Shown piece after piece: positions 26,080 to 41,404 of a stretch of DNA of 64,000 bases. The position numbers and the translations under genes are program-made. The notes beneath the pieces are model-generated. The model was not told the DNA's origin and made no database searches. It saw only the letters and a program-made list of their open reading frames with translations. Numbering within the stretch: position 1 is the stretch's first letter; each line of letters begins with the position of its first letter. Origin of the DNA: Mytilus californianus (taxonomy: Eukaryota); the NCBI RefSeq assembly GCF_021869535.1, contig NW_026262690.1, positions 80,972,001 to 81,036,000 of the forward strand, given 5' to 3'.

Positions 26080-26692
26080 GTTCTGTAGGGTATAATGTTT
26101 TTGACCCGTCCGTCCATCCCTCAGTCCTGTTCTTGTCATCTCAACTCCTCTGAAACCACACAACAGAATTTCATGAAACTTTGTAGATAATAAGGACATA
26201 ATATGGAAATGTGCATATCGACAGGAAATTATGACACAATTTTTGTTCTAGGAGCAATGCCCTTTTGAACTTAGAATTTGGACTAAATAAACTACTGCAA
26301 GAGTTTGTCATCGCAACTCCTCTGAAACCACACAACAGAATTTCATGAAACTTTGTATATAGTAAGGACATATTATGTTGATGTGCATATCGACTGGAAA
26401 TTGTGATTCAATTTTTATTTTAGGAGTTGTGCCCTTTGAACTTGGAATTTTTGCCTAAATATACTACTGCAAGAGTTTGTCATCGCAACTCCTCTGTCAC
26501 CACTCAACAGAATTTTATGAAACTTTGTAGATAATAAGGACATAATATGTAAATGTGCATATCCACAAGAAATTTTTATCAGTTGACTTTTGTAGGAGCT
26601 ATGAGTCTTTGAACTAAGGCATCTGGTGAGATTTTGTTTGCCCAGTGACAATGTGGGGGCATTGGGAATGTGAGCGTGCTCAAAGGTTCTTT
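26080..26692 (+). mobile_element. HINE-like element with three ~172-bp repeats
   Basis: CCGT microsatellite head; AACTCCTCTGAAACCAC at ~26142 and ~26315, variant at ~26486. Confidence 0.7.
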
Positions 26693-26721
26693 AATTAAAT
26701 GGCCAAAATCTTCAGATGACC

Positions 26722-27853
26722 CTTTTTAGCTCACCGGGGTCCGAAGGGCCCCATGTGAGCTTATGCCATCACTTGCAGTCCATCGTCGTCGTCTGTCGTC
26801 GTAAACTATTTCAAAAATCTTCTCCTCTGAAACTACTGGGCCAAATACCTTCAAACTTTAACTAAATGTTCCTTAGGGTATCTAGTTTATAAATTGTATC
26901 CGAAGTTTTGATCCATTGACAAACATGGCCGCCATGGCTAAAAATAGAACATAGAGGTCAAATGCAGTTTTTGGCTTATATCTCAAAAACTAAAGCTTTT
27001 AGAGCAAATCTGACATGGAGTAAAATTGTTCAATTGGTCAAGATCTATCAGCTCTGAAATTTTCAGACAAATCGAACAACCCATTGTTGGGTTGCTGCTC
27101 CCGAATTGGTAGTTTTCACAAAATTTTGCAGTTTTTATTATTTTGAATATTATTATAGATATATGTAAACTGTAAGCAGCAATAATGTTCAGCAAAGTAA
27201 GATCTACAAAACAGTTAATATGACCATAATTGTCAATTGACCCCTTAAGGAGTAATTGCCCTTTAAAGACAATTTTACACAATTTGTTCATCAAGTTTGC
27301 TAACATTTAAAAATCTTCTCCTCTGAAACTACTTGGCCAATTACCTTCAAACTTTAAATAAATGTTCCTTAGGGTATCTTGTTTATAAATTGTATCCGAA
27401 GTTTGTATCCATCGACAAACATGGCCGCCATGGCTAAAAATAGAACATAAGGGTCAAATGCAGTTTTTGGCTTATATCTCAAAAACTAAGTCTTTTAGAG
27501 CAAATGTGACATGGGGTAAAATTGTTTAATTGGACAAGATCTATCGGCCCTGAAATTTTCAGACAAATCGAACAACCCATTGTTGGGTTGCTGCTCCCGA
27601 ATTGGTAGTTTTAACAAAATTTTGCAGTTTTTTGTTATTATTTTGAATATTATTATAGATATATATAAACTGTAAGCAGCAATAATGTTCTACAAAACAG
27701 TTAATATGACCATAATTGTCAATTGACCCCTTAAGGAGTTGTTGCCCTTTAAAGACAATTTTACACAATTTGTTCATCAACGTTTGCTAACATTTAGAAA
27801 TCTTCTCCACTGAAATACAGGTGAGCGATTCAGGCTCTTGAGAGAGACTTGTT
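26722..27853 (+). mobile_element. HINE-like element with ~490-bp internal repeats; a more decayed relative follows to ~28765
   Basis: Head TTTTAGCTCACC...GTGAGCT plus (GTC)n; tail CAGGTGAGCGATTCAGGCTCTTGAGAGAGACTTGTT; inverted relative to 12088-13880. Confidence 0.8.
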
Positions 27854-29262
27854 AGAAGTTATTGCCTTTGAATGACTTTACCAATTTTGGGGTATACATG
27901 TATTGGGGTTTTTATTTTTGCAGAAATGTAATAGATAGAAGATGTAAATAACAAAATGATCAGCAAAACAGATCTACTAATGAGTAGAATAAAAAAATTG
28001 CAACCAACAATCAATCAATCCAATATGATTGAAGTCCTATAAGAATTAATCCTTTTAGGTGTTGTTGCCCTTAATTAAATGATAATTTTAAACTAAATTC
28101 TGAGTGTTTGTCTATTATTGTAAAAAACAGTTATAGATAAGGTAAAAACTGTAGAGAGCAAACCTGGTCAGCAAATACAAAATGTACAAAAATGTTAATA
28201 AGACCAAAACCATTAGATGACTATTTAGGAGTTTAATGCCCTAAAATGAATAGTTTTTACTAATTTTGAGTTTTTACCTGTTATCCTGTAAATTTTAATA
28301 GATAAATTTACACTTAAAAGATAAAAAAAATAAATAAAAAAAACCAATATTAGACCTACATGACCTACAAAAATGCCTACATGACCGAGACCATTCAATG
28401 ACTTCTTACACGATTTATTGCTTTTAAATAATAAGTTTTGGCTAATTGTGTTTTTTGTCCATTATCTTAATAAATAATAGATAGGAAGACTATAACAACA
28501 AATGTGACCAGCAATATTTTACAAGATCAACAAAAAATGAATATATGACCTAATTATTGGATGACTCCTTACAGGAGTTATTGCCCTTAAAATATGATTT
28601 TTGGATTAATTTTCAAAGTTTGCATTTTATGTCGGAAACTATAAAAGATAGGAAGGAAACTTGAAACACTAAAAAATTATCAGCAATTAATATATAATTT
28701 GAGGTGCTTCTTGATAACTGAAAAAGGTGGGTGAGTAATTCAGGTTGTTAGGGACCTCTTGTTTCAAATCAAGTGGTCTTCCTGTCTTGGTTCTTTTGTT
28801 AATTTTCAAAATCCAGACATCTCAGTTGAAATGTATATATCATTTCAACTGAGATGTCTGGATTTTGAAAATATATATCATTTCAACGTTAAAGATCTTT
28901 GACACCCTGTGAACAATGTTACCATGCGGGAACCTTAAATTATCACTACACAACTATAAAACATATTTTCCTTCGGTTTTCTCCAGATTGTTCTTAATTA
29001 AGTGAATCCAGTTTTTGCGGTTTTCTGCGACATAAAAATACAACCCTCCTGGCATATGAAAATTTGCATGATATCTCAGTGCATGCTTAAAGTTGGTGCA
29101 AAATCAAACTTTTACATGGAATTATAAACTGTTGTATGCATACAGAAAATTGAAACTTTTGTAGACCGATTGCAAATGGTGTTGCGGCAACTGTGCCAAA
29201 AGTTTGTTTCAAATCTATTTCTCTTGATAGGTATTCGATCAATTTTTACAAGATTTCCCGTC

Positions 29263-29317
29263 ATGGCATGGCGTTCGAGTGGCAACAATAACACTGACTT
29301 GATTAACAACTTGAAAA
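29263..29317 (+). CDS. PCMT1: PCMT1 exon 1 ([18 protein letters not shown])
   Basis: ATG at 29263, GTAAGT donor, phase 1. Confidence 0.92.
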
Positions 29318-32300
29318 GTAAGTATTTGACTATAACATGAGGACTTTACTCATTGCTAAGTCGCCACAGACCTACTCGACCCAACATTTAACCAACTCGA
29401 CCCTTTAAGTAAAAGGAGTTATGGCCTAATCCTGCTAAACAAAATACCTCCTGAGTTTGCTTACTACTCTATGAAGAGGAGTTAATTCCCTCTTAAAAAT
29501 GACCCAAGAACAAGAGAAGTCAAAATTGCCAAACTATATGAACCAAGGAAAAGAGTCTAATACTGCTGATTAAGGTTCATCAAAAGGAATTGAAAATATG
29601 GCCGTGTTTACACCACAAAATCTACTATGAGTACAGACAAACTGATGCATCTAGGAAAGTTTTAAGGTATGGCAGGACCTAGATATATAAAAGTTATATG
29701 TAGTCTTATGTTTCAGAAAATTCAAAACTAACATGGATTTTGATGTGAATTTTTTTCCAGTCTGCAGAAGATAGCAAAATAAACACATGAGTTTCATTTG
29801 ATACGGTCCACTCAGTTACACAGCTTTAATCACCTGTTGTTTGCAGATGTCTATTGTCCATCTATTGTCCATTTAATTCAATACTATTCACAACATTTAT
29901 TATATGAGGGGAGCTTCGCAAAACCTCTTTTCCAACTTAGTTTATTTTGGCACCTTCTGCAGGAATGAAAAAAAATGAATAGCAAAATCCAGAAAAGTTT
30001 ATAATTTTCTGAAACATAAAATGCATTTAAAATTTAATTATCTAATTCCTGCCATGCCTTAAAACTTTACCAGGTGCACAGGTTTGTCTCTACTCAGAGT
30101 AAAATTTGTGGTGTAAATACGGCCATATTAGCTAAAAGGTTGTGATGAACCTTAAAGAATGGAAAACTATTTCAAATTGGAGTTAAAAATTTTGAATTCC
30201 CATACAGTTAAACCCTGAGAATCTCATCTCCTTGAAATTTAAAGTGCCAGGATGTTCGTAAATATGTATGCATGTTTCTAAGCAACTGTTCTGTTTCAAT
30301 GATGCTTTCCTGTATTTTTCAAAGCATTTTCACCTCCATTATGAAAATCTGCACATATTCAATATGGCTGCAATAACCATGAAAGGGCCTATTATAAAAA
30401 AAAGCAGTTTAAACAGGAACATGACAACTCATACTTTTCAGAGGCGGATTTAGGGGGAGGGCCCAGGGGCCCGGGCCCCCCCTTTTGTGGGAAAAATTTG
30501 GTTGATTATATAGGGAATCACTGAAGCATGACTGGAGCGGGCCCCCTCTTAGGCAGTCAGTGGGCCCCCACTTATGAAAATTTCTGGATCCGCCACTGCT
30601 TTTAACAATTAGTACTTCAACCAGCTCATACCCATTTATATAGCATTGTTATGTATCATTTAATTAGATTAATCGTAAACTTAATGATCATTTTGTATTT
30701 TATAGTTGAAGTTGTCTGAGACATGTATAAGTATGGAATACACCATATTAAATCTCTTTGATTGTGAAGTAACATTAAAAATAAGAAGATGTGGTATGAT
30801 TGCCAATGAGACAACTCTTCACAAGAGACCAAATGACACAGAAATATATAAGAAATATAGGTCACCGTACGGCCTTCTAAAAGGCCCCGAAATGACAAAT
30901 GTAAAACTATTCAAACGAGAAAGATACATGTAACGGCCTGATTTATGTACAAAATAATGAATGAAAAAACAAATATGATATACAGCAACAAACGATAACC
31001 ACTGAATTACAGGCAAGTTCATCAGTTTTCCCTTGTTGGCAAATGAGAACATACTGCACTTCATCTTCAGATCAAAATTTGAATTTTGCAATTTATATTT
31101 CAGATATTTAAAAGATAATAATGAGACTACATTAATGAATTTTCTTGAGTTTTCCTTGTTGAACATTGCTTTCGGTGAAAACAGTGGTTGTAAAAGTATA
31201 CCTCAATTAACAGACTTTGATATTCAAAGTGTAGCATTTAATATGAGGCAGGTGTTACCTGTGAATGAGGATGAAGTCTGTATAAATTTATTTTTTGAAT
31301 TCAAGCATATTTTAACTCATGAACTCCAGAATTGTTGAAAAAGTAACGGAAATGCAGAAACGTTTCTGATGTTGGTCTTGTTGTTCTGAATTTTTTTTGT
31401 GACATCATTTTCAATGTAAACAAAGAAACACTATCATCAGGTAACTTTTTTTTCATGTCAAAGAATTATCAAAATAAAGTTGTTATAATTTATATCTTTA
31501 ACCGACGAAGATACCAAATCATCTTGTTATTCTTATCAGATACTGAAATCTGACTGATTGATCAGGCGAGTCTCAAGAGAACACATTTTGTTTGCTATAA
31601 ATTCGTATGTTGAATAAGCTCCAGACTCATTTTAAAATGTTAGGAATTTATTTTAATTGTTTAACTGGCAGTATTCTTTCGGTAAATAAAAACAACAAAT
31701 TTGCAGGAAACAATATGATGCTCCTTCCTATATTTTACTCAAACTCCTTTGACAAACAAGACCTGAAGAAAGAGAGAGATTTCTTCGCAAATGCGAGAAA
31801 CTAAAAAAGTTAGTAAAAAAAGTTAACGATTTTGAGTTCATTAGTATACATGTATTGATTTTTTTTTTTTATTTTATTTTATTTTCTTACTGTAATTCGG
31901 GATAATTGGGTCTATTATCCACTAATGATCACTAATTAGTATATTTTATAATCAAAATTTCAGAATTCTAAAAAGATTTACTTACACAGACCCTGAAATT
32001 GTTATTCCTTTAGAGTTAAGACCCTAGCAAATTTATATTGAATCATAATAGTTAAAAAGTATGAATAAAAAGAGATGCTGGGCATGAAGATTCTGTTTAA
32101 ACCATACATTCTTTAATGATAGATTTTGATGAACAAAATGCCTACATGTATAGCAAGCTCTATATCAACCAATGTATAATGACTAAGTTCTGAATGAATA
32201 CAACAGAGATGTCCAAATTACAGAAACCATTGATTTCTGTAAAACTTCATGAAGGCACAGCAACAACCTGGCTTGAGACAGGTACACACTAAAATTTTGC

Positions 32301-35300
32301 AGGGTTTTAATACTGAACCCTCTCCATAATGAACAAGATCAGACAGTAAAAAAGAAAAAAAGAATGAGAACTTATGATCTTTTTATTTTATTTTTTGTTT
32401 CTGAATTAACAAAATAAATGATGAGTAGTCCAAAATATACTGATAAATCAACAAATTAAACTTTTTCCATATTTATTTTTTTAGTGGGAGTCCAGAAATT
32501 ACTTTATACTTTATTTAAGATTGAGTGTTCAGAACTAACAAAGTATTTTGTATTTTTTAGGAAATGGAATTTTAAAAACGCCAGAAGTTATTGAGGCTAT
32601 GAAACAAGTGGATAGAGGAAGCTTTGCTAAGTATAATGCATATGCAGATTCCCCTCAATCCATTGGATATGCAGTTACCATTAGTGCCCCTCATATGGTA
32701 AATACTATAAGTTCGCTAAGTCAAATTACCTGCCCTTGGTTGACAAGTAGTTATGGTGGTACACTATGTAGTCACTTTGTGTAAGTATTTTATTTTATTC
32801 ACAAAAAAATTGAGATGGGTATGTACATGTAAGTGTTATTAGTTTACAACACACACATATGTTTTCTTTTCTCCAATCATCTCCAATATTAATATCTTCC
32901 TACAAAATTAACATAAGGGAAGACCACACCGAATTTAATCTTTATTATTTGGATATGAAAAAAATCTGTATTAAACCTTCATTTATATTCCAATCTTTAC
33001 TTTACAGATAGATGTACAAAGGTTTCCAAAATTTCACCATATGGTTTTGAAGCATGCAGTCACAAGTATTGCATGATTGTAGTTAATCTCTGAATTCTTA
33101 TGGATTTATACAGATTAATAAAGTAAAAATTGACCTACATTTCAGCATGCTCATGCCTTAGAGTTACTAGCAAATCACTTGACAGAAGGGAAAAGGGCGT
33201 TAGACGTAGGATCAGGGAGTGGTTATTTAACAGCTTGTATGGCTATAATGGTAAGTTTTAGGGTAAAGATCAAAACCAATATCTTCCCAGGTTGACCACT
33301 ACCTTTGATAGTTCAAACAAAATAGTGCAGTGAAATGATCATTATTTAGATCCTATATCCAATCAATGTAATGCAATTAATTGATGATATGTTATACTTT
33401 GATATTTAAGTTCCAGTATGATGTGTATTTGAATTACCATACTAATTAAAAATTACGTAAGTAATGCATTGTGTATGAATCTGGAGACCTTGAATCTGTT
33501 ATAAAAAATAGGCTTAACTACATATGTACAATCATGAACAAAGGAAGATAACTCCAACTCAAATTTTCAACTTGCCTAGCAAAATACAATTTCAATATTT
33601 TATTTTAAAATTCTCAAAATTTGCAAGATTTACCCTTCAATGCTCACAAGCACTTTGATTATCTTATTTGGCTGATGGTCATATATCTGTGGTGTATGTT
33701 CTTTTCACATTTTAATCTTCCTCTGGGGAACCTGTGAACAGAGTAGTACAAAACTGTGCAGGAATGTTCTTGACAATATCCTTTTGTACTGATTCTTCAA
33801 CAAAAAAATGGCTGCCTCTGCCTATTCTTGTTTCTGATTGGCTAGACTTTGAACTACAGCTGCTTTGTTATACCTTTTATTTGAGAAAAAATGGTATTCT
33901 ACATTTTTACCTTTGCAAGGTGAGCAGTGATTCAAGCTCTGGAGCCTCTAGTTAAAAAAAAACAGTATTTTGATGTGGCATACGGTTCTCGCCACTAAAA
34001 TACCAGCAATTAATTAACATATAAATGCCAGTTCACCAGTAATAAGACGTTGCCCTATAATGGTGACCTTGAGTATCAGGATAATAAGAAGCACTTAAAA
34101 ACTAACATTTTCTGTGATTCACTTAGATAGGGAAAGTGTTAAGATGCCATTAGGAGGCCAACAATCATTCAATTTTAGCTACATGAGCTAGTAATTTTTA
34201 GAAATCTGACAATATTTTTCTCCACTCAACTATATATTTGTCATTTTAGCTTGGAGAAAATGGGAAAGCTGTTGGCATTGATCATATTCCAGAACTAGTG
34301 GATGAGTCCATTAAAAATATGAAGAAAAATACAATAACAAAACAACTGATGGAATCTGGTAGGATGGTTTTAGTGGCTGGAGATGGTAGAAAAGGCTACC
34401 CTCCTGAGGCCCCATACGATGCCATCCATGTTGGAGCAGCAGCTCCACATTTACCAGAGGCTGTAAGTTGATATCATAGAAATGAGGTTTATTAAGGGAA
34501 ATATATGAGTAGGGCCTGGAAGACATTCACTGCGTCCTTCTACCAAAATGCTCTTGTTATTAAAAGATTTCTATGGGTGAGAAACACATCTTAACAAAAG
34601 ATTATGTTGGTCCATGCATGTGACCATTTTAGTCTGAAGCAAAAACTATCATAAGTTAGCCTTAATTATGAATTTCATCATTACAGTACACTTTTTTTTT
34701 CAACATATTTATCGACAAATGTTTATGAAAACTAATGAACTTACATTTCACAGAATTTTTTGGCCAATGTTGCCCCTCTGTGAAACTACCGGTACTCCTT
34801 TGTAGTAACTACATTGTACATCATGGGTTTAGTTGATCATCTTATGAACAGGAGATTTTTTCAAGTATTCTTGCTCTTAATGTCTTGTATCAATAAAAAT
34901 GGAAAAACCATTACACCAATCAGGCGAAGTAATTGAAAATTGTAGAGTATTATGGATTGTGTATGCATCATGAGACATTTGTGATATAGAAAATTAATGA
35001 AATGAAAAATATATGTAACATAAATCATAAGAAATTACAAATATTTCTGAGATAGTTAGTGCAAATTTCATGAAAGTGGGAGAAGAAATTTGTTTTAATT
35101 TATCGGTTTGAATAAAAGGAATAAAAAGTTAGTTTTGTTCACATGCTGTACTTACTTATAAGATATAAACTTTGTACTTTCAGCTTGTTGAGCAGCTGAA
35201 GCCTGGTGGAAGATTAATTGTCCCAGTTGGTCCACAAGGAGAACACCAACATCTGTTACAAGTGGATAAGAATGAAGACGGAACCATTACCAAGCAGAAT

Positions 35301-35363
35301 CTTATGGGTGTTATCTATGTTCCGTTAACAAGCAAAGACAAACAGTGGCCAAGGTTTAAATAA
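29263..35363 (+). CDS. PCMT1: Protein-L-isoaspartate(D-aspartate) O-methyltransferase, 229 aa (alternative 233-aa KDEL isoform via 37032-37053)
   Basis: Exons 29263-29317, 32561-32697, 33146-33250, 34250-34462, 35184-35363; MAWRSSG start, [21 protein letters not shown] motif, [23 protein letters not shown]. Confidence 0.97.
29574..30151. mobile_element. Kolobok-like MITE with ~200-bp TIRs and TTAA TSD in PCMT1 intron 1
   Basis: TTAA|GGTTCATC ... GATGAACC|TTAA; arms share ATATGGCCGT.TTTACACCACAAA etc. Confidence 0.8.
30439..30598. mobile_element. GC-rich MITE with CAG(T/A)GGCGGAT TIR
   Basis: CAGAGGCGGATTT ... GGATCCGCCACTG; CTTTT on both flanks. Confidence 0.75.
30776..31012 (-). mobile_element. 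Copy of an abundant 3'-anchored dispersed repeat (other copies ~10165-10212, ~25850-26065, ~55272-55370, ~62085-62175)
   Basis: Shared GAGTTGTCTCATTGGCAATCATACCACATCTTCTT followed by a T/AT-rich end. Confidence 0.75.
32561..32697 (+). CDS. PCMT1: PCMT1 exon 2
   Basis: [21 protein letters not shown]...[19 protein letters not shown]. Confidence 0.96.
33146..33250 (+). CDS. PCMT1: PCMT1 exon 3 (SAM motif I)
   Basis: [35 protein letters not shown]. Confidence 0.97.
34250..34462 (+). CDS. PCMT1: PCMT1 exon 4
   Basis: [17 protein letters not shown]...[28 protein letters not shown]. Confidence 0.97.
35184..35363 (+). CDS. PCMT1: PCMT1 exon 5 (ends QWPRFK*; internal donor at 35353)
   Basis: [19 protein letters not shown]...[14 protein letters not shown]. 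Confidence 0.96.
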
Positions 35364-35856
35364 TATGCATGTTGGATCTTCCTTCTGTTACATGTGGTTA
35401 TTATTCTTTTGGTGCTTAGTTATTCCATCATTCCATTTCGTTTGACTGCTTGTTTACGTACTGCATATCTTCATTGCATTAAAAATGGTTCTATTTATGA
35501 TTATGCTGTAGGAAAAACCTTTTGAAGAACATGTGTGTATCCTATTTTGCCAAAACTGATAGTTGTATTGAACAATTTTATTTTGAAAAATAGCAAGGAT
35601 GACTTGTTTTCATTTTCATGATAAATTTTAGATGAAATACCAATTAAAAATATTCAAAATTATAGATGTGACCATTTTTTCTTGTCAGAATCGTGTGTTT
35701 GTGTCATAATCATATCCTTAATATCCCTACAATTACACATGGTGGTGGTTTAATAGGAAATGATTAATGTATAATTTCTTATCATTTAGCAATGCAAAAT
35801 GTTTGTATTTCACAAACCACATATTTTTTTTGAAATATGAGGATGGAAATCATTTA

Positions 35857-36064
35857 CTGTGGATTCATTTATTTTCGTGGGTACCAAATTTCGTGGATTG
35901 AGGAAAAATTGCAGTTTTGTGGATATTTGATTTCGTGGTTTTGCAAATGTCTGCATTCAAAGCAATAGACCTTTTGTAATTCGTTGAACATTTAAATTTG
36001 TGGTTCACCTTTTCCAACGAAACCCACGAAAATAGGTATCAAACGAATAATAATGAATCCACAG
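35857..36064. mobile_element. TA-flanked MITE (208 bp)
   Basis: TA|CTGTGGATTCATT ... AATGAATCCACAG|TA perfect TIR; internal TTCGTGG repeats. Confidence 0.85.
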
Positions 36065-37031
36065 TATTTAATATTTTTTATTCACAGGAAAAAACGACAT
36101 ATTTCAAAAGTCAAATCATAACATATTTATCATATCAAGTAAAGTACAACCTTCTGACTATCCTTCAACAATTGTCCACAACAAGTTGTTGCTCAATGTT
36201 GAATACTAACTGATAATACTGACATTTGGGTTCCTTCAGAATTTGATTTGTTTTTGATGATTTAAATGTTTGAGCAATTGAATTTAGATTATTTAGAACC
36301 TCTCAGATACATGAACTAGGATTTACAAATTTGCATGTAAATTATGAGTGGAACCAGGAAGTTGATGTCACATCAACTTGAAACTTAGTACACAACAATG
36401 ACAAGGTTTTTTTTTTTAACGTCCTTGACTACCCATGAGGGTCTTGCACGGTCGGCTCTTAGTACTTATGTTTTTTGTAAACTTTTATATATGCCACAGT
36501 TTTGACTCTTGATTTCCCCATTCACTGATCATAGAAAAGTGATAGTGTGAAAGCAGTACATTCTTAGGTTAAAGGCTAAAGGACTGTGAATCAAATTTTA
36601 TTTGACCTTATTGTTTTGCATGTTTTAAATACTATTGTTATTAAGTTATTTTTAAAGTAAACATAGTATGTATCATGATTTCTCATTTCACTCATAACTT
36701 ACATACAATCAAAAGCAAAATCATGCTAACTTAACTGGATTTCCAAGTAAAATTCTGGTCATTTATCCTGTTTTGTATTTCAAATATTGAAAGTTAAATT
36801 TTAGCATACATTGTACATACAAATATAGCTCTTGAATTGCTATTGTAGAAACAACTACAGTTAAAAGCTGTGTGAAAGACTGTTTTGATATAGATTTAGA
36901 TTCCACTTTCCAATTTTTTGAAGGAGGAGGGGGGTTGGAAGAGCACACAAAATAAAATATTATGTGAATCATATTTAACCACACAAGAAACACATTTCAT
37001 GACTTGTAATCTTTTCATTTGTTTTATTTAG

Positions 37032-37053
37032 CAGCAGTAAAGATGAATTGTAG
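37032..37053 (+). CDS. PCMT1: Predicted alternative PCMT1 terminal exon encoding (S)SSKDEL*
   Basis: Strong polypyrimidine tract and TTTAG acceptor; joins donor CCA AG|GT (35353) in frame: AGC AGC AGT AAA GAT GAA TTG TAG. Confidence 0.75.
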
Positions 37054-37471
37054 CTGCTGACAACATTATCTTCCAGAAAACAAGTGCTATCTATGTAAGC
37101 TGTATCCAATGATTCCCTGACACTTTTTCGTTCAGACATTTATACAAATACTCAACATAAGGTATCATTCACAAGTTATGAAGTTCACAAGAAGAATGTT
37201 ATTTACAGTGAAGCCAGCTTAGATGAAACCAATTTGAACTGTGGTTAGACAGGTGTTACACAGGTTAAATCACAAAGGAATTTTTACTATGTCCTTATTC
37301 AGTTTACACATGTTTCCAATTTATGCAATGTTCAGTTCAGACAATATCCACTGTTTTCATTTGAAAAAATCCTTAATATGGTATTGATATTTGTTTCTCT
37401 AAAACTAAATGTTCTCAGAGTATTTTTTTCTGTATTTCTAGTAGAAACAGGGGGAAAAATTAAACAAATAA

Positions 37472-38141
37472 TTTTTATACGCCCGTCAAAATTTTGACGG
37501 GACGTATTATGGTATTCAAATGTTCGGCGTCCGTCTGTCTGTCCGTCCGTCTGTCTGGCGTCCACATGTCGCACCCTTACTTGAGAATGACTTATCCAAA
37601 TTTCATGAAACTTAAAATAGTTGTTTCTTTTGATGGCCAAACAATCTGTATACTTTTTGGTGCAAATAAGATTAAAACTTTTTGAGTTAAGGGACTTTGT
37701 AACTAAAACGGGGGTGTTTTTTCAAATGTCGCGCTGTATCTCAAAAACGATTTATGATTATTGCTTAAAATTTTACACACTTCTTAGTTATATTAATCTT
37801 AAGATCTGTATACTTTTTGGTGATGATTCAAAATTTTATTTGAGAGTTATTGAGTTTTTTGTTAAAAAGGGGGGGGGGGAGGTTTCACATGTCGCACCGT
37901 ATCTAAAAAACAATTTATGATTATTGCTTAAAACTTTACACACTTCTTAATTATATTAATCTAAAGATCTGTATACTTTTTGGTGATGATTCAAAATTTT
38001 ATTTTAGAGTTATTGATATTTTTATTAAAAAAAGGGGGGGTTTTCACATGTCGCGTCGTATCTCAGAAACGATTTATGAATATTGCATAAAACCTCACAC
38101 ACAAGACGATGGGCGTATCATGCGCTCTAGGCGCAGCTGTT
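37472..38141 (+). mobile_element. HINE/pearl-like element with internal repeats
   Basis: Sub-TIR ATACGCCCGTC / GATGGGCGTAT, head hairpin, CCGT/CTGT microsatellite, 3' hairpin GCGC-TCTAG-GCGC. Confidence 0.85.
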
Positions 38142-39124
38142 TATTTGGTATTTCAGTTCAAATCATTTAAATAGTCTCAAACAATACAAGTTTGATCAAA
38201 ATTGTAAACTTTAATAATGTGTCTACAATATTTTTGTTTGTTATGACAGAAATAAACATGCCATTATTGCAGTGTCTATTCATTTTGACATTTTTGTTTT
38301 CATTAATATCAGTTTTACTCTATTAAAAGGTTGAAGTGGTGTTCTGTGTTTTTTTTTTCATATATTGCAAATTTTACAATAAAATGAGCTTAAAATAAAC
38401 ACCCTGTGCAAATGTGTAAATTTGATATGAAAACATAGTGTACATTTGAATAACTAGCATATGTGTTTATGTATTTATTGTTATGGCCAGTTGATGTGAA
38501 CTTGTGTGTCAATTTTTTGTTCCACGCTACGTTATGCCCTTTGGAAATATTAATTATATGGAAAATTGCATTGTAAGTACTTTTAAGCCTACATTTCTTC
38601 AAGATATTTAAAAATAGTTTTGAAGAGCACACCCATTTCTTTTTCTTTTTTCCCATGGACAGATAAAACATGAGCAAAGCTGGGGACATTGGAACTGTGT
38701 TCTTTTATTTCCATTGCATTATGGTTTGAAATTAACAAAAAAGTAAGTTACATTTATTCGGAGAATTAAACTGATAAAAAGTTATTTGGGGAATCAGTTT
38801 ATACCATTTGAAATGTCAAACTAAGGGGGCAAATTTTTTCTCACTCTGACAGAAAGAAAGTTACATATTCTAATTTCACATTAATAATTTAAATTTCTGG
38901 GTCAATTAAATGACCTGGATGTGATTTTGTTTGTATCTGTTTGTATTGTAAGTTTTTGAAAGTTCTTTATCAATTAAATGTTATTCATTTTAATAGTTTG
39001 CACTGCATGGCAGAAAAGACAATATATAACATAAAATATGTAAATATTTTGTACATTACTCAATTGTACTGTTTTTGTTTGCCTTTATGCTTTAGAAATG
39101 TATATGATTACATGTAGAATACTT

Positions 39125-39290
39125 CATGAATAATTTATTAATTGTATACTGTGATACATGAATAATTCATTAATTGTATACTGTGATACATGAATAATTC
39201 ATTAATTGTATACTGTGATACATGAATAATTCATTAATTGTATACTGTGATACATGAATAATTCATTAATTGCATACATGAATATTTATT
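39125..39290. repeat. 32-bp minisatellite, ~4.5 copies
   Basis: ATTGTATACTGTGATACATGAATAATTCATTA at 39141, 39173, 39205, 39237. Confidence 0.9.
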
Positions 39291-41404
39291 ACTAGTAATT
39301 GTATACATATGAATATTGTATCACATGCATAATAAGAAAAGTATTTAGGAAGACAAATCCTTAATGTTATTTGCCAGTAAAACTTTTGTGAACTTATGAA
39401 GAAAAAACATCAGCATTACTTGTTAGTAAATCTTTCTTGAACATGAATAGGTAGAAAAAAATTTATTAAATATTCTGTTATTATTTTAGTTGTGAAAAAA
39501 GGTTAGCCAGACAAAAAGTTTTTAGTTAAGAGAAAAGTATGTCTCATGAATATGAAGATATTTCTGCACATGACTGCTCGTGAGAAAGCTTTATTTAAAT
39601 GATTACTTGTCAGAGGGATGAATAATTTCTAGAGTGGCATCAATTCAATTTGTAGTCTCAGTTGTAAAAAGTGCTATAAGTATCCACAATATCAGTATTT
39701 AAATGTGTAATCTTATTACCAATCCCCAGCTGTAAAAAAAGTGCTATAAGATACTATGACCGGTGATTTGGTTTTATTTGATGACAAAATATTCCATAGG
39801 ATGAAATTTATTTGAGAAATGCTGGTGTTAGATATTTAGAATGGCTATATGGTTATAAAATTAATTGCTTAAAACTTTTAACATTTTATGGACTATTGTG
39901 TAGTCTTTAAAATGTAACTGTTGTATTATTTAGGAATGTTATTGAAATAAATATTTAATGCTTAATATTTGCCTGATTATTTTATGAAGTTGCTTAGAAG
40001 GAGAGTATTTCAGCTCACCTGTGTTAAGGACTTAGTAGGTTTTCAACCCGAAGAACAAATGTTAGGTCAACAGTTGACATCTTAAGCCATCACTTTGCAT
40101 CTGTCTGAAGCGCTTCACTTTTATATTTTCTGAAACAATTGGCTAATTATGAAATTACTTGACAGGAATGGTGTAAGAAGGTTCTCTACAATGATCCTCA
40201 TATATCAAATATAGTTATCATATTACTCATAATAAGAGATTTCACATGACAAAAGAAAATTTCAAGCAGTAGCTGAACCATGAAAATGAGGTCAAGGGCA
40301 ATGGACATATAACAAATGAAAATTTTGTAACATAAAGTTTCTGCAGACAAGGTATGAAGCATCCAGGTCTTCAACCTTTTGAAATATAAAGCTTTATACA
40401 AAAAGTTTACACCACTGCCAGATAGTAATCCTAGGTCTTGTGGCGAGACAATAATGTATGAAGATTTTGTCACATTTTGCTCAGTAACTATGATTCAGAG
40501 TACCCTGAAATTTGTTACCAGGCTTCAAGTTTTCTCATTTGAATTGTTGAACATTTGTCATTTTGGGGCCACTTTTAGCTTTCTATGCAGTATGGGTTTT
40601 GCTCATTGTTGAAGGCTGTACAGTGATCTATAGTTAACTTTTATTATCATTTGCTCTCTGGTGTAGAGTTATCTCATTTGCAATCGTAACACATCTTCAC
40701 ATCAATTGCTCATCAACATCCTGTTTAAAGAATACTTTTAGTGGTGGTATCATTAGTAAGCAAGAGCTCAGTTCAACTTGTTTAATTTATATGTTGGATA
40801 GACTCAAAACATTTGCCCTGCAACAAGCCCCTTATACATCCCTTTGAGTTGCTGCAAGGGATCTTTATCTTAGAGTTTGGCACTCCCTAAAACAGGCACA
40901 AAAATTTAACATCCCCATTGCCACTATGTAATTGTGTAATTATACATCCTGCACAGCCAAACAGATGCCCCACTTAGTAGGGGTTTTACTGCTGGATGGA
41001 AGAAGTCTGGGGTTGAGCGAATTTCTATACTCTAAGTACACTTGATCAGTGACCACACCACCACATGTAGTCATATTTTGGAGGGGGAGGGAGTCTTCTC
41101 AGTATCCAAACCTTGATGATGTTACAGTAGAAGTGCATGAACTCACTTAAAGCCATGAATGGAGCCATCTATTGCAAAAATTTCCCATTTTCTGCTGTAA
41201 AATAGCTGCTGACATTTATTCCTATTCTACTTAATTCCAGCAAAACTGTATTTTGTATAAATCTTGTAAGCATGATGAAAATTCATATCCACTTGGTTGA
41301 AGTGAAGGTAACACATCACTAGCTTTATGGTAGTCCTCAACTTTTGTTGGATGATGGTAGTGTGAGATTATCTGTGTTAGAGCAATGTGAGTGTAATCAA
41401 GTGT

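Follow-up and report, generated by a model that had tools for sequence, protein, structure and literature searches.

A splice switch gives mussel PCMT1 RFK- and KDEL-ending isoforms and may add an ER retrieval signal

Why does an enzyme regarded as cytosolic end in a possible endoplasmic reticulum (ER) signal? One isozyme of mammalian PCMT1 (protein-L-isoaspartate O-methyltransferase) ends in RDEL, and because the enzyme is regarded as cytosolic this ending has been an oddity since 1992. Reports of the switch between RWK and RDEL endings go back to that year (Potter et al., 1992, cited in PMC7859441, PMC7696048 and PMC9146343); in the papers searched, RDEL is considered a possible ER signal of unproven meaning and the switch is described in vertebrates only (PMC7859441, PMC7696048, PMC9146343). 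A signal peptide of PCMT, a PCMT in the ER lumen and xDEL isoforms of invertebrates were all absent from the literature that we searched, in which the papers linking RDEL with isoaspartyl concern vertebrates only. The question is taken up here for the mussel Mytilus californianus, in a window of 64,000 nucleotides (contig NW_026262690.1, positions 80,972,001 to 81,036,000 of the forward strand, assembly GCF_021869535.1) in which an earlier note, made from the letters alone, had pointed to a KDEL-ending isoform of PCMT1. Positions 26176-40053 of the window correspond to JAKFGE010000004.1:80998176-81012053 of assembly GCA_021869535.1 (100% identical).

In the mussel gene the switch consists of two weak 5′ splice sites, 35353 and 35396, which lie 43 nt apart and compete for one terminal exon at 37032. 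The KDEL junction is real and reproducible, and the KDEL and RFK forms are of similar abundance. On the sequence comparisons presented below, we give a probability of about 0.6 to the reading that this PCMT1 orthologue has a two-donor switch homologous to the mammalian one and that its KDEL tail serves as an ER retrieval signal. High use of the switch in the mussel, the recurrence of the embedded donor and xDEL-like tails in protostomes and deuterostomes, and a conserved signal-like N-terminal extension on the long forms speak for long-term selection on the ER-type tail and against a mammalian accident. How are the two tails made from one gene? How old is the pair? How would the enzyme enter the ER?

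Two competing donors and one terminal exon

The locus is the M. californianus orthologue of PCMT1 (PCMT or PIMT, EC 2.1.1.77). Five coding exons were located on the + strand from stop-to-stop open reading frames (ORFs) and by tblastn with animal PCMTs. The 59-residue product of exon 5 aligns over its full length with residues 168-226 of human PCMT1 (PDB 1i1n; E = 5e-20), mussel QWPRFK standing opposite human QWSRWK; the comparison with human was made at the protein level only, with this structure. The product spliced in silico (start 29176, joint 35353>37032) is identical in 262/262 residues to RefSeq XP_052105942.1, 'PCMT-like isoform X1 [Mytilus californianus]', which has a precomputed match to Pfam PF01135 and a gene range of 7878 bp, equal to 29176-37053. 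RefSeq holds three isoforms of the locus, X1 (262 residues, SSSKDEL), X2 (261 residues, ...SSKDEL) and X3 (258 residues, ...RFK), and SSKDEL and RFK forms are found in M. edulis, M. galloprovincialis and another Mytilus. The KDEL form, called hidden in the earlier note, is thus already in public annotation as isoform X1; a conserved feature is confirmed, not a new kind of thing, and since the isoforms are already correctly annotated, nothing changes for the mussel genome itself.

RNA evidence was compared over 33000-37700, using a sampled 6% of one stranded raw-read run (X21) together with the assembled RNA contigs X1 and X7, from two studies other than that of X21, and X9, from a related species. 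Coverage in X21 has a single mate orientation, as expected of a + strand transcript. The features of the gene and the evidence for each are as follows.

29176-29262, + strand: upstream in-frame AUG and 29-codon extension (MVLRQLCQKFVSNLFLLIGIRSIFTRFPV); RefSeq X1, X2 and X3 and six transcript contigs
29263-29317, + strand: coding remainder of exon 1 from the canonical start MAWRSSG...; tblastn, in-silico splicing and transcript alignment
32561-32697, + strand: exon 2; tblastn, in-silico splicing and transcript alignment
33146-33250, + strand: exon 3, with the S-adenosylmethionine (AdoMet) motif ALDVGSGSG; joint 33250>34250 (26 reads), in-silico splicing and transcripts
34250-34462, + strand: exon 4; joint 34462>35184 (39 reads), in-silico splicing and transcripts
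35184-35353, + strand: exon 5 core, present in both isoforms and ending CAG TGG CCA AG at the proximal donor AAG/GTTTAA (a slash marks the cut here and below); alignment to 1i1n, joint 35353>37032 and transcripts
35354-35396, + strand: alternative extension of exon 5, 43 nt, G TTT AAA TAA (R-F-K-stop, 35361-35363), ending at the distal donor GTG/GTTATT; joint 35396>37032
35397-37031, + strand: last intron (from 35354 in the KDEL form), free of exon-like stranded coverage outside repeats in run X21
37029-37037, + strand: tandem acceptor TAG-CAG-CAG (NAGNAG type) after a strong polypyrimidine tract; sequence
37032-37053, + strand: first 22 nt of the shared terminal exon, coding in the KDEL form and 3′ untranslated region (3′UTR) in the RFK form; sequence, in-silico splicing and transcripts
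37054-37476, + strand: 3′UTR of the shared terminal exon, transcripts resuming at 38144-39688; stranded depth 43-49 in X21 and transcript contigs

Exon 1 starts at 28990 or earlier in transcripts and ends at the donor AAA/GTAAGT, and exon 5 opens at 35184 after ...tactttcag. If exon 5 is not spliced at 35353, it encodes ...KDKQWPRFK followed by TAA at 35361-35363. The internal donor CCAAG/GTTTAA lies within the Arg codon, the cut falling between 35353 and 35354, and the acceptor at 37031/37032 follows a long pyrimidine tract, ...ttttatttag/CAGCAG (ttatttag/CAGCAGTAAAGATGAATTGTAG). The earlier note had named this read-through end, the donor at 35353 and the acceptor at 37031, and each was found where it had been placed. 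When the proximal donor is used, the cut inside the AG/G codon drops G-TTT-AAA-TAA and the frame enters the terminal exon as (AG)C AGC AGT AAA GAT GAA TTG TAG, that is S-S-S-K-D-E-L-stop with TAG at 37051-37053, and the protein ends ...QWPSSSKDEL. When the donor at 35396 is used, the segment stays in, the protein ends R-F-K, and the terminal exon is 3′UTR only. Both AAG/GTTTAA and GTG/GTTATT are weaker than the four upstream donors (GTAAGT/GTAAAT), which fits the near-equal use of the two.

In X21, the joint 35353>37032 (GT..AG; listed as 35351>37030, with the cut at +2) was seen in six reads with six different starts, and it is also assembled in contigs of X1 and X7. The joint 35396>37032 (GT..AG) was seen in 10 reads with nine starts, and this form is assembled in X9. 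For comparison, the constitutive joints 33250>34250 and 34462>35184 were seen in 26 and 39 reads, respectively. The KDEL form accounts for ~37-40% of the terminal junction reads, on a total of 16 junction reads from one library. Six full-length Logan transcript contigs (L004-L009), each from a different SRA run within the series SRR138917xx-138918xx, have the structure e1-e2-e3-e4-35184..35353-37032..37476 and read ...cagtggccaag/cagcagtaaagatgaattgtag. The in-frame SSSKDEL ending proposed for 35353>37032 is thus borne out by the sequence, raw reads, contigs of two further studies, six transcript contigs and RefSeq X1. A contig of X9 joins ~35522 to 37032 with nine extra letters between them (stretch 35367-35522). 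In that related species ~35522 may be a third, more distal donor, and since it is located after the RFK stop, the protein would be unchanged.

Two parts of the picture given in the earlier note need revision. It had taken the KDEL codons for a hidden 22-nt exon, and a 22-nt cassette was rejected, as stranded depth stays at 43-49 far past 37053 (measured across 37082-37395) and the transcripts run to 37476 and beyond; position 37032 opens a shared 3′-terminal exon, and the alternative lies in a pair of 5′ splice sites. It had also taken the RFK form for a read-through terminal exon. An RFK mRNA ending in the intron was rejected likewise, because depth drops after 35396 and the joint 35396>37032, which uses the second donor 43 nt downstream, has 10 reads. 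Nonsense-mediated decay usually follows a rule of 50-55 nt; the RFK stop precedes the last exon junction by only 33 nt and therefore would be too close to trigger it.

The acceptor belongs to the NAGNAG tandem class. As had been noted for TAG-CAG-CAG at 37029-37037, all three acceptors keep the frame, and two of the three are represented: 37032 by reads and transcripts, and 37035 by isoform X2 of RefSeq and by SSKDEL forms in other Mytilus species. Unlike in that class, 37032 stands alone among the read joints listed here, so the expectation of reads at the alternative acceptors was borne out for 37032, with none to 37035 or 37038 among the joints listed for X21, a list that leaves out 22 weaker joints. 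Acceptor 37038 has no support in the listed read joints, transcripts or RefSeq isoforms.

Recurrence of the two tails among animals

The same arrangement can be read in the DNA of two other molluscs. Mactra antiquata has ...CAA TGG CCA AG/G TTT AGA TAA (CCAAG/GTTTAGATAA), which gives RFR-stop on read-through, and an acceptor ...acttcag/ATCTAAAGATGAACTTTGA that gives an RSKDEL tail when spliced. Biomphalaria glabrata has ...TGG CCC AG/G TGG AGA TAG (CCCAG/GTGGAGATAG), which gives RWR-stop on read-through, and an acceptor ...cgcag/GAAGAAATTTGAGCTGTGA that gives RKKFEL. Codon, phase and switch logic are all as in the mussel. Oysters have both tails as well (RWK and ...SHEDL, each supported by many Logan transcript contigs), and so do a second mytilid-like bivalve (RFK and SERDEL/SERDDL) and cuttlefish (K and KEYDEL). 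Thus xDEL isoforms do occur in related molluscs, as the earlier note had anticipated, examples being RSKDEL of Mactra, SERDEL of the second mytilid and KEYDEL of cuttlefish. Other bivalve tails are STSDEL in Ylistrum, PNDEL in Potamilus, KEEL in Solemya and REDL in Ostrea, and xDEL, xEDL, xDDL and xEL endings are present in gastropods as well.

Beyond molluscs, tails of this type were found in a nemertean (Tubulanus, RHDEL), a brachiopod (Lingula, KEDL), annelids (Lamellibrachia, RDDL; Owenia, KTEL), chelicerates (ticks, spiders and horseshoe crabs: RRDEL, KNEL, TNEL), crabs (RREL), hemimetabolous insects (termites, RNEL) and vertebrate Pcmt and Pcmtl (RDEL, GDEL, GEL, HEL). Near misses are KDEI in Dreissena and ...GRDEF in a hemichordate, and among the PCMT proteins collected from holometabolous insects only short tails seem present. 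Of the C-terminal tails collected, 244 are distinct, and 83 of these end in [ED]-L, ~1% being expected by chance on a rough estimate. The tail comparison covers bilaterians and includes no cnidarian or other non-bilaterian animal sequence; a group of PCMT proteins around P0363 proved to be nearest to annelids, named clusters among the distant PCMT matches are Volvox, Capsaspora, nematodes and protist transcripts, and the Capsaspora PCMT model ends QLQNA.

Is this the mammalian switch? The enzyme is the same, the point of divergence follows ...QW(S/P) and aligns residue for residue, a short basic-aromatic tail (RWK or RFK) alternates with a longer acidic ER-type tail (RDEL or SSSKDEL), and in both cases the choice of splice site shifts the frame into a shared downstream exon. 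Divergence at the same codon, which the earlier note had stated, agrees with the alignment of QWSRWK with QWPRFK and with the tails of vertebrate proteins. There are differences: the mussel has a canonical KDEL with a Ser-rich linker, its junction codon is Ser (AG/C) and not Arg (AG/G), and a tandem CAG-CAG serves as its acceptor. The 43-nt spacing to the second donor is measured here for the mussel, and the likeness to mammals rests on protein isoforms. On this comparison, the switch would be homologous to the mammalian RWK/RDEL switch and would date at least to the bilaterian ancestor, an age that had been proposed before and that the tail pairs in protostomes and deuterostomes support.

In zebrafish, Pcmt ends in -RDEL and Pcmtl in -GDEL (PMC7859441). 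The Pcmtl of skate, tarpon and snake resembles the bivalve protein in having a hydrophobic N-extension ...RT-MAW together with HEL, GEL or DEL tails; unlike the mussel protein, it is a separate paralogue in vertebrates, and in skate the segment between donors is in frame, both isoforms ending in HEL. These skate isoforms (P0148, P0289, P0290) differ by an in-frame insert of 11 residues, YVAAAGRCRVR, between QWSG and HEL, so that the skate arrangement is a two-donor variant whose extension lacks a stop.

A third recurrent class of alternative PCMT C-termini resembles the CaaX prenylation box. It includes Haliotis ...CCLL, Ptychodera ...CQVL, Saccoglossus ...CVSM, Megalops ...CCSS, Anguilla ...CCSF, leafhoppers ...CEIC/CEVC and Macrobrachium ...CSLL; none was seen for the mussel. 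Such tails suggest that the C-terminal switch is a general localization module.

An upstream AUG and the route to the ER

An ER retrieval signal is of use to a protein fraction that enters the ER, and here the N-terminus becomes important. An AUG at 29176 lies 87 nt upstream of the canonical MAWRSS start and in frame with it. The 29-residue extension that it opens has no acidic and four basic residues, an uncharged run of 11 residues and, in its best 10-mer, a hydropathy of 2.27. It is found, identical in protein sequence, in all six transcript contigs, whose 87 nt differ from the reference by one synonymous change, whereas the 5′UTR just upstream shows several substitutions and a 20-nt indel, the exon 1 region being ~90% identical overall; the extension is thus conserved while the adjacent 5′UTR diverges. 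The AUG at 29176 has the weaker context (caaATGg) and that at 29263 the stronger one (gtcATGg), and therefore leaky scanning on a single mRNA could yield the two N-termini. At ~29050-29120, the 5′UTR contains a short upstream ORF (MKICMISQCMLKVGAKSNFYMEL-stop), in the same frame as PCMT, that ends before the first PCMT AUG; it is also present, with changes, in the transcript haplotype.

Other Mytilus, another mytilid and heterodont clams have related extensions, as do most of the long PCMT models in the range from annelids to skate and snakes. These extensions stand before MAW(R/K/T)S in the majority of long animal models and often end ...R-T; in oysters, alternative first exons are joined to a common ...GLVSIFRT. 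For the 186 distinct extensions, the best 10-residue hydropathy has a median of 2.22 and the uncharged run a median of 13.5 residues. Their share of acidic residues is 1.9%, that of the catalytic domain 11.8% and that of non-coding read-through tails 6.2%; 'RT' precedes the mature Met in 33 of the 186. Extensions and xDEL/xEL tails are found together in the same models and transcripts. The extension looks like a signal or targeting peptide, and a mitochondrial presequence or signal-anchor could also fit, given the Arg near the junction. It has been pointed out that N-terminally extended isoforms might exist (PMC7859441). With this conserved signal-like extension in the transcripts, the KDEL tail need not be on a purely cytosolic protein. 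Hence the earlier analogy with mammals holds for the pair of isoforms, and its premise that the enzyme lacks a signal peptide becomes doubtful.

An outline of how the favored reading would work is as follows. Initiation at the upstream AUG at 29176 would add the signal-like extension and let a fraction of the enzyme enter the ER, where the KDEL-type tail would act on that fraction as a retrieval signal. Initiation at 29263 would give a cytosolic enzyme on which the tail is silent. The PROSITE pattern PS00014 for such signals is [KRHQSA]-[DENQ]-E-L, and the C-terminal K-D-E-L of the mussel protein matches it exactly, as in ER proteins retrieved in this way; what sets the mussel protein apart from these is that its ER entry hinges on a putative signal-like extension from an upstream AUG.

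Several points weigh against the favored reading. The mammalian RDEL isozyme was purified from erythrocyte cytosol, and the mammalian splice phase used in the comparison is the putative one that fits the protein isoforms QWSR/WK and QWSR/DEL. The mussel extension is without an evident canonical -3/-1 cleavage site, extensions in general often end R-T or R-x-x before Met, which is no classical signal-peptidase site, and many tails of invertebrates, among them RREL, RVEL, KFEL and KYDL, do not match the PROSITE KDEL pattern when it is applied strictly. The isoform shares, too, come from 16 junction reads of one library. Furthermore, TargetP found no targeting peptide in zebrafish reference proteins (PMC7859441).

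Could the KDEL mRNA be real and conserved and its tail have no ER role? The enzyme would then be made from the second AUG only and stay cytosolic, and the acidic ...[DE]-L tail would be selected for charge, for a cytosolic partner or for stability, or would be weakly constrained. The cytosolic erythrocyte isozyme speaks for this, as do the many tails that depart from canonical KDEL, the stronger Kozak context at the second AUG and the fact that the gene caller for the Logan contigs began the ORF there, together with the zebrafish reference proteins for which no targeting peptide is predicted (PMC7859441). We nevertheless consider it unlikely. An upstream ORF kept between haplotypes with one synonymous change beside a diverged 5′UTR, and kept between Mytilus species and another mytilid, is at odds with an enzyme made from the second AUG only, as are the signal-like extensions that precede MAW(R/K/T)S in the majority of long models from molluscs to skate and snakes, often with the ...R-T junction; and a terminal [ED]-L in a third of the tails is what an ER-retrieval code predicts.

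The extension might instead send the enzyme elsewhere, serving as a membrane anchor or mitochondrial presequence; in that case the C-terminal switch would be independent of it, and the KDEL would never meet its receptor. Extensions that are basic and free of acidic residues, often with Arg at -2 or -3 ('RT' in 33/186), do recall a mitochondrial processing motif. Uncharged hydrophobic runs such as theirs (median 13.5 residues), however, typify the h-region of a signal peptide and not an amphipathic presequence, and the fact that single models and transcripts combine an extension with an xDEL/xEL tail does not suit an independent switch, which makes this route improbable.

The weakest alternative, that 35353>37032 is splicing noise or an artefact of assembly or annotation, could appeal to a weak proximal donor (AAG/GTTTAA) and to only six raw reads in the sampled 6% of one run, and it is already refuted by the ~37% share of this joint among terminal junction reads, its assembly in X1 and X7, from two studies besides X21's, and in six Logan contigs, and the retention of donor and tail in other bivalves and one gastropod.

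The reading of the mussel tail as an ER retrieval signal invites a broader proposal, to which we give somewhat under even odds: animal PCMT may use an ancient modular localization code, in which an optional signal-like N-extension is combined with a C-terminal switch among cytosolic R-[WF]-[KR] tails, xDEL/xEL tails for ER retrieval and CaaX-like tails for prenylation. The N-extension may come from an upstream AUG, as in mussels, or from alternative first exons, as in oysters, and a CaaX-like tail may be added in several lineages. If this were true, an ER-luminal and sometimes membrane-anchored isoaspartyl repair enzyme would have existed since the bilaterian ancestor, and the puzzle of an RDEL tail on a 'cytosolic' enzyme, open since 1992, would be resolved. 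Whether isoaspartyl repair takes place inside the ER becomes a question that simple constructs can test directly, and the wider pattern of embedded donor, xDEL tails, N-extensions and CaaX-like third tails is what is most worth following.

Repeats, haplotypes and neighboring genes

The last PCMT intron holds a 212-bp miniature inverted-repeat transposable element (MITE) at 35855-36066 with 24-nt terminal inverted repeats. Its summed contig depth in RNA runs reaches ~68,000; as this depth is huge and comes from both strands, the family must be abundant in transcripts from many loci. The transcript contigs are 98-99.5% identical to the window in coding exons and ~88-90% identical in UTRs. They lack a 667-bp segment of the 3′UTR, 37477-38143, which includes a 163-bp tandem repeat (37720-38102). 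A 3′UTR intron was rejected for this segment, which has no GT..AG at its borders and contains the tandem repeat; the reference haplotype probably carries it as an insertion.

A 733-residue Mytilus coruscus model named 'VRK' ends ...QWPRFK and is an annotation fusion of adjacent VRK1-like kinase and PCMT genes. An LRP11-like gene of Biomphalaria glabrata that encodes a MANEC domain (minus strand; L003 15246-15398) lies tail to tail with PCMT, ~2.3 kb downstream.

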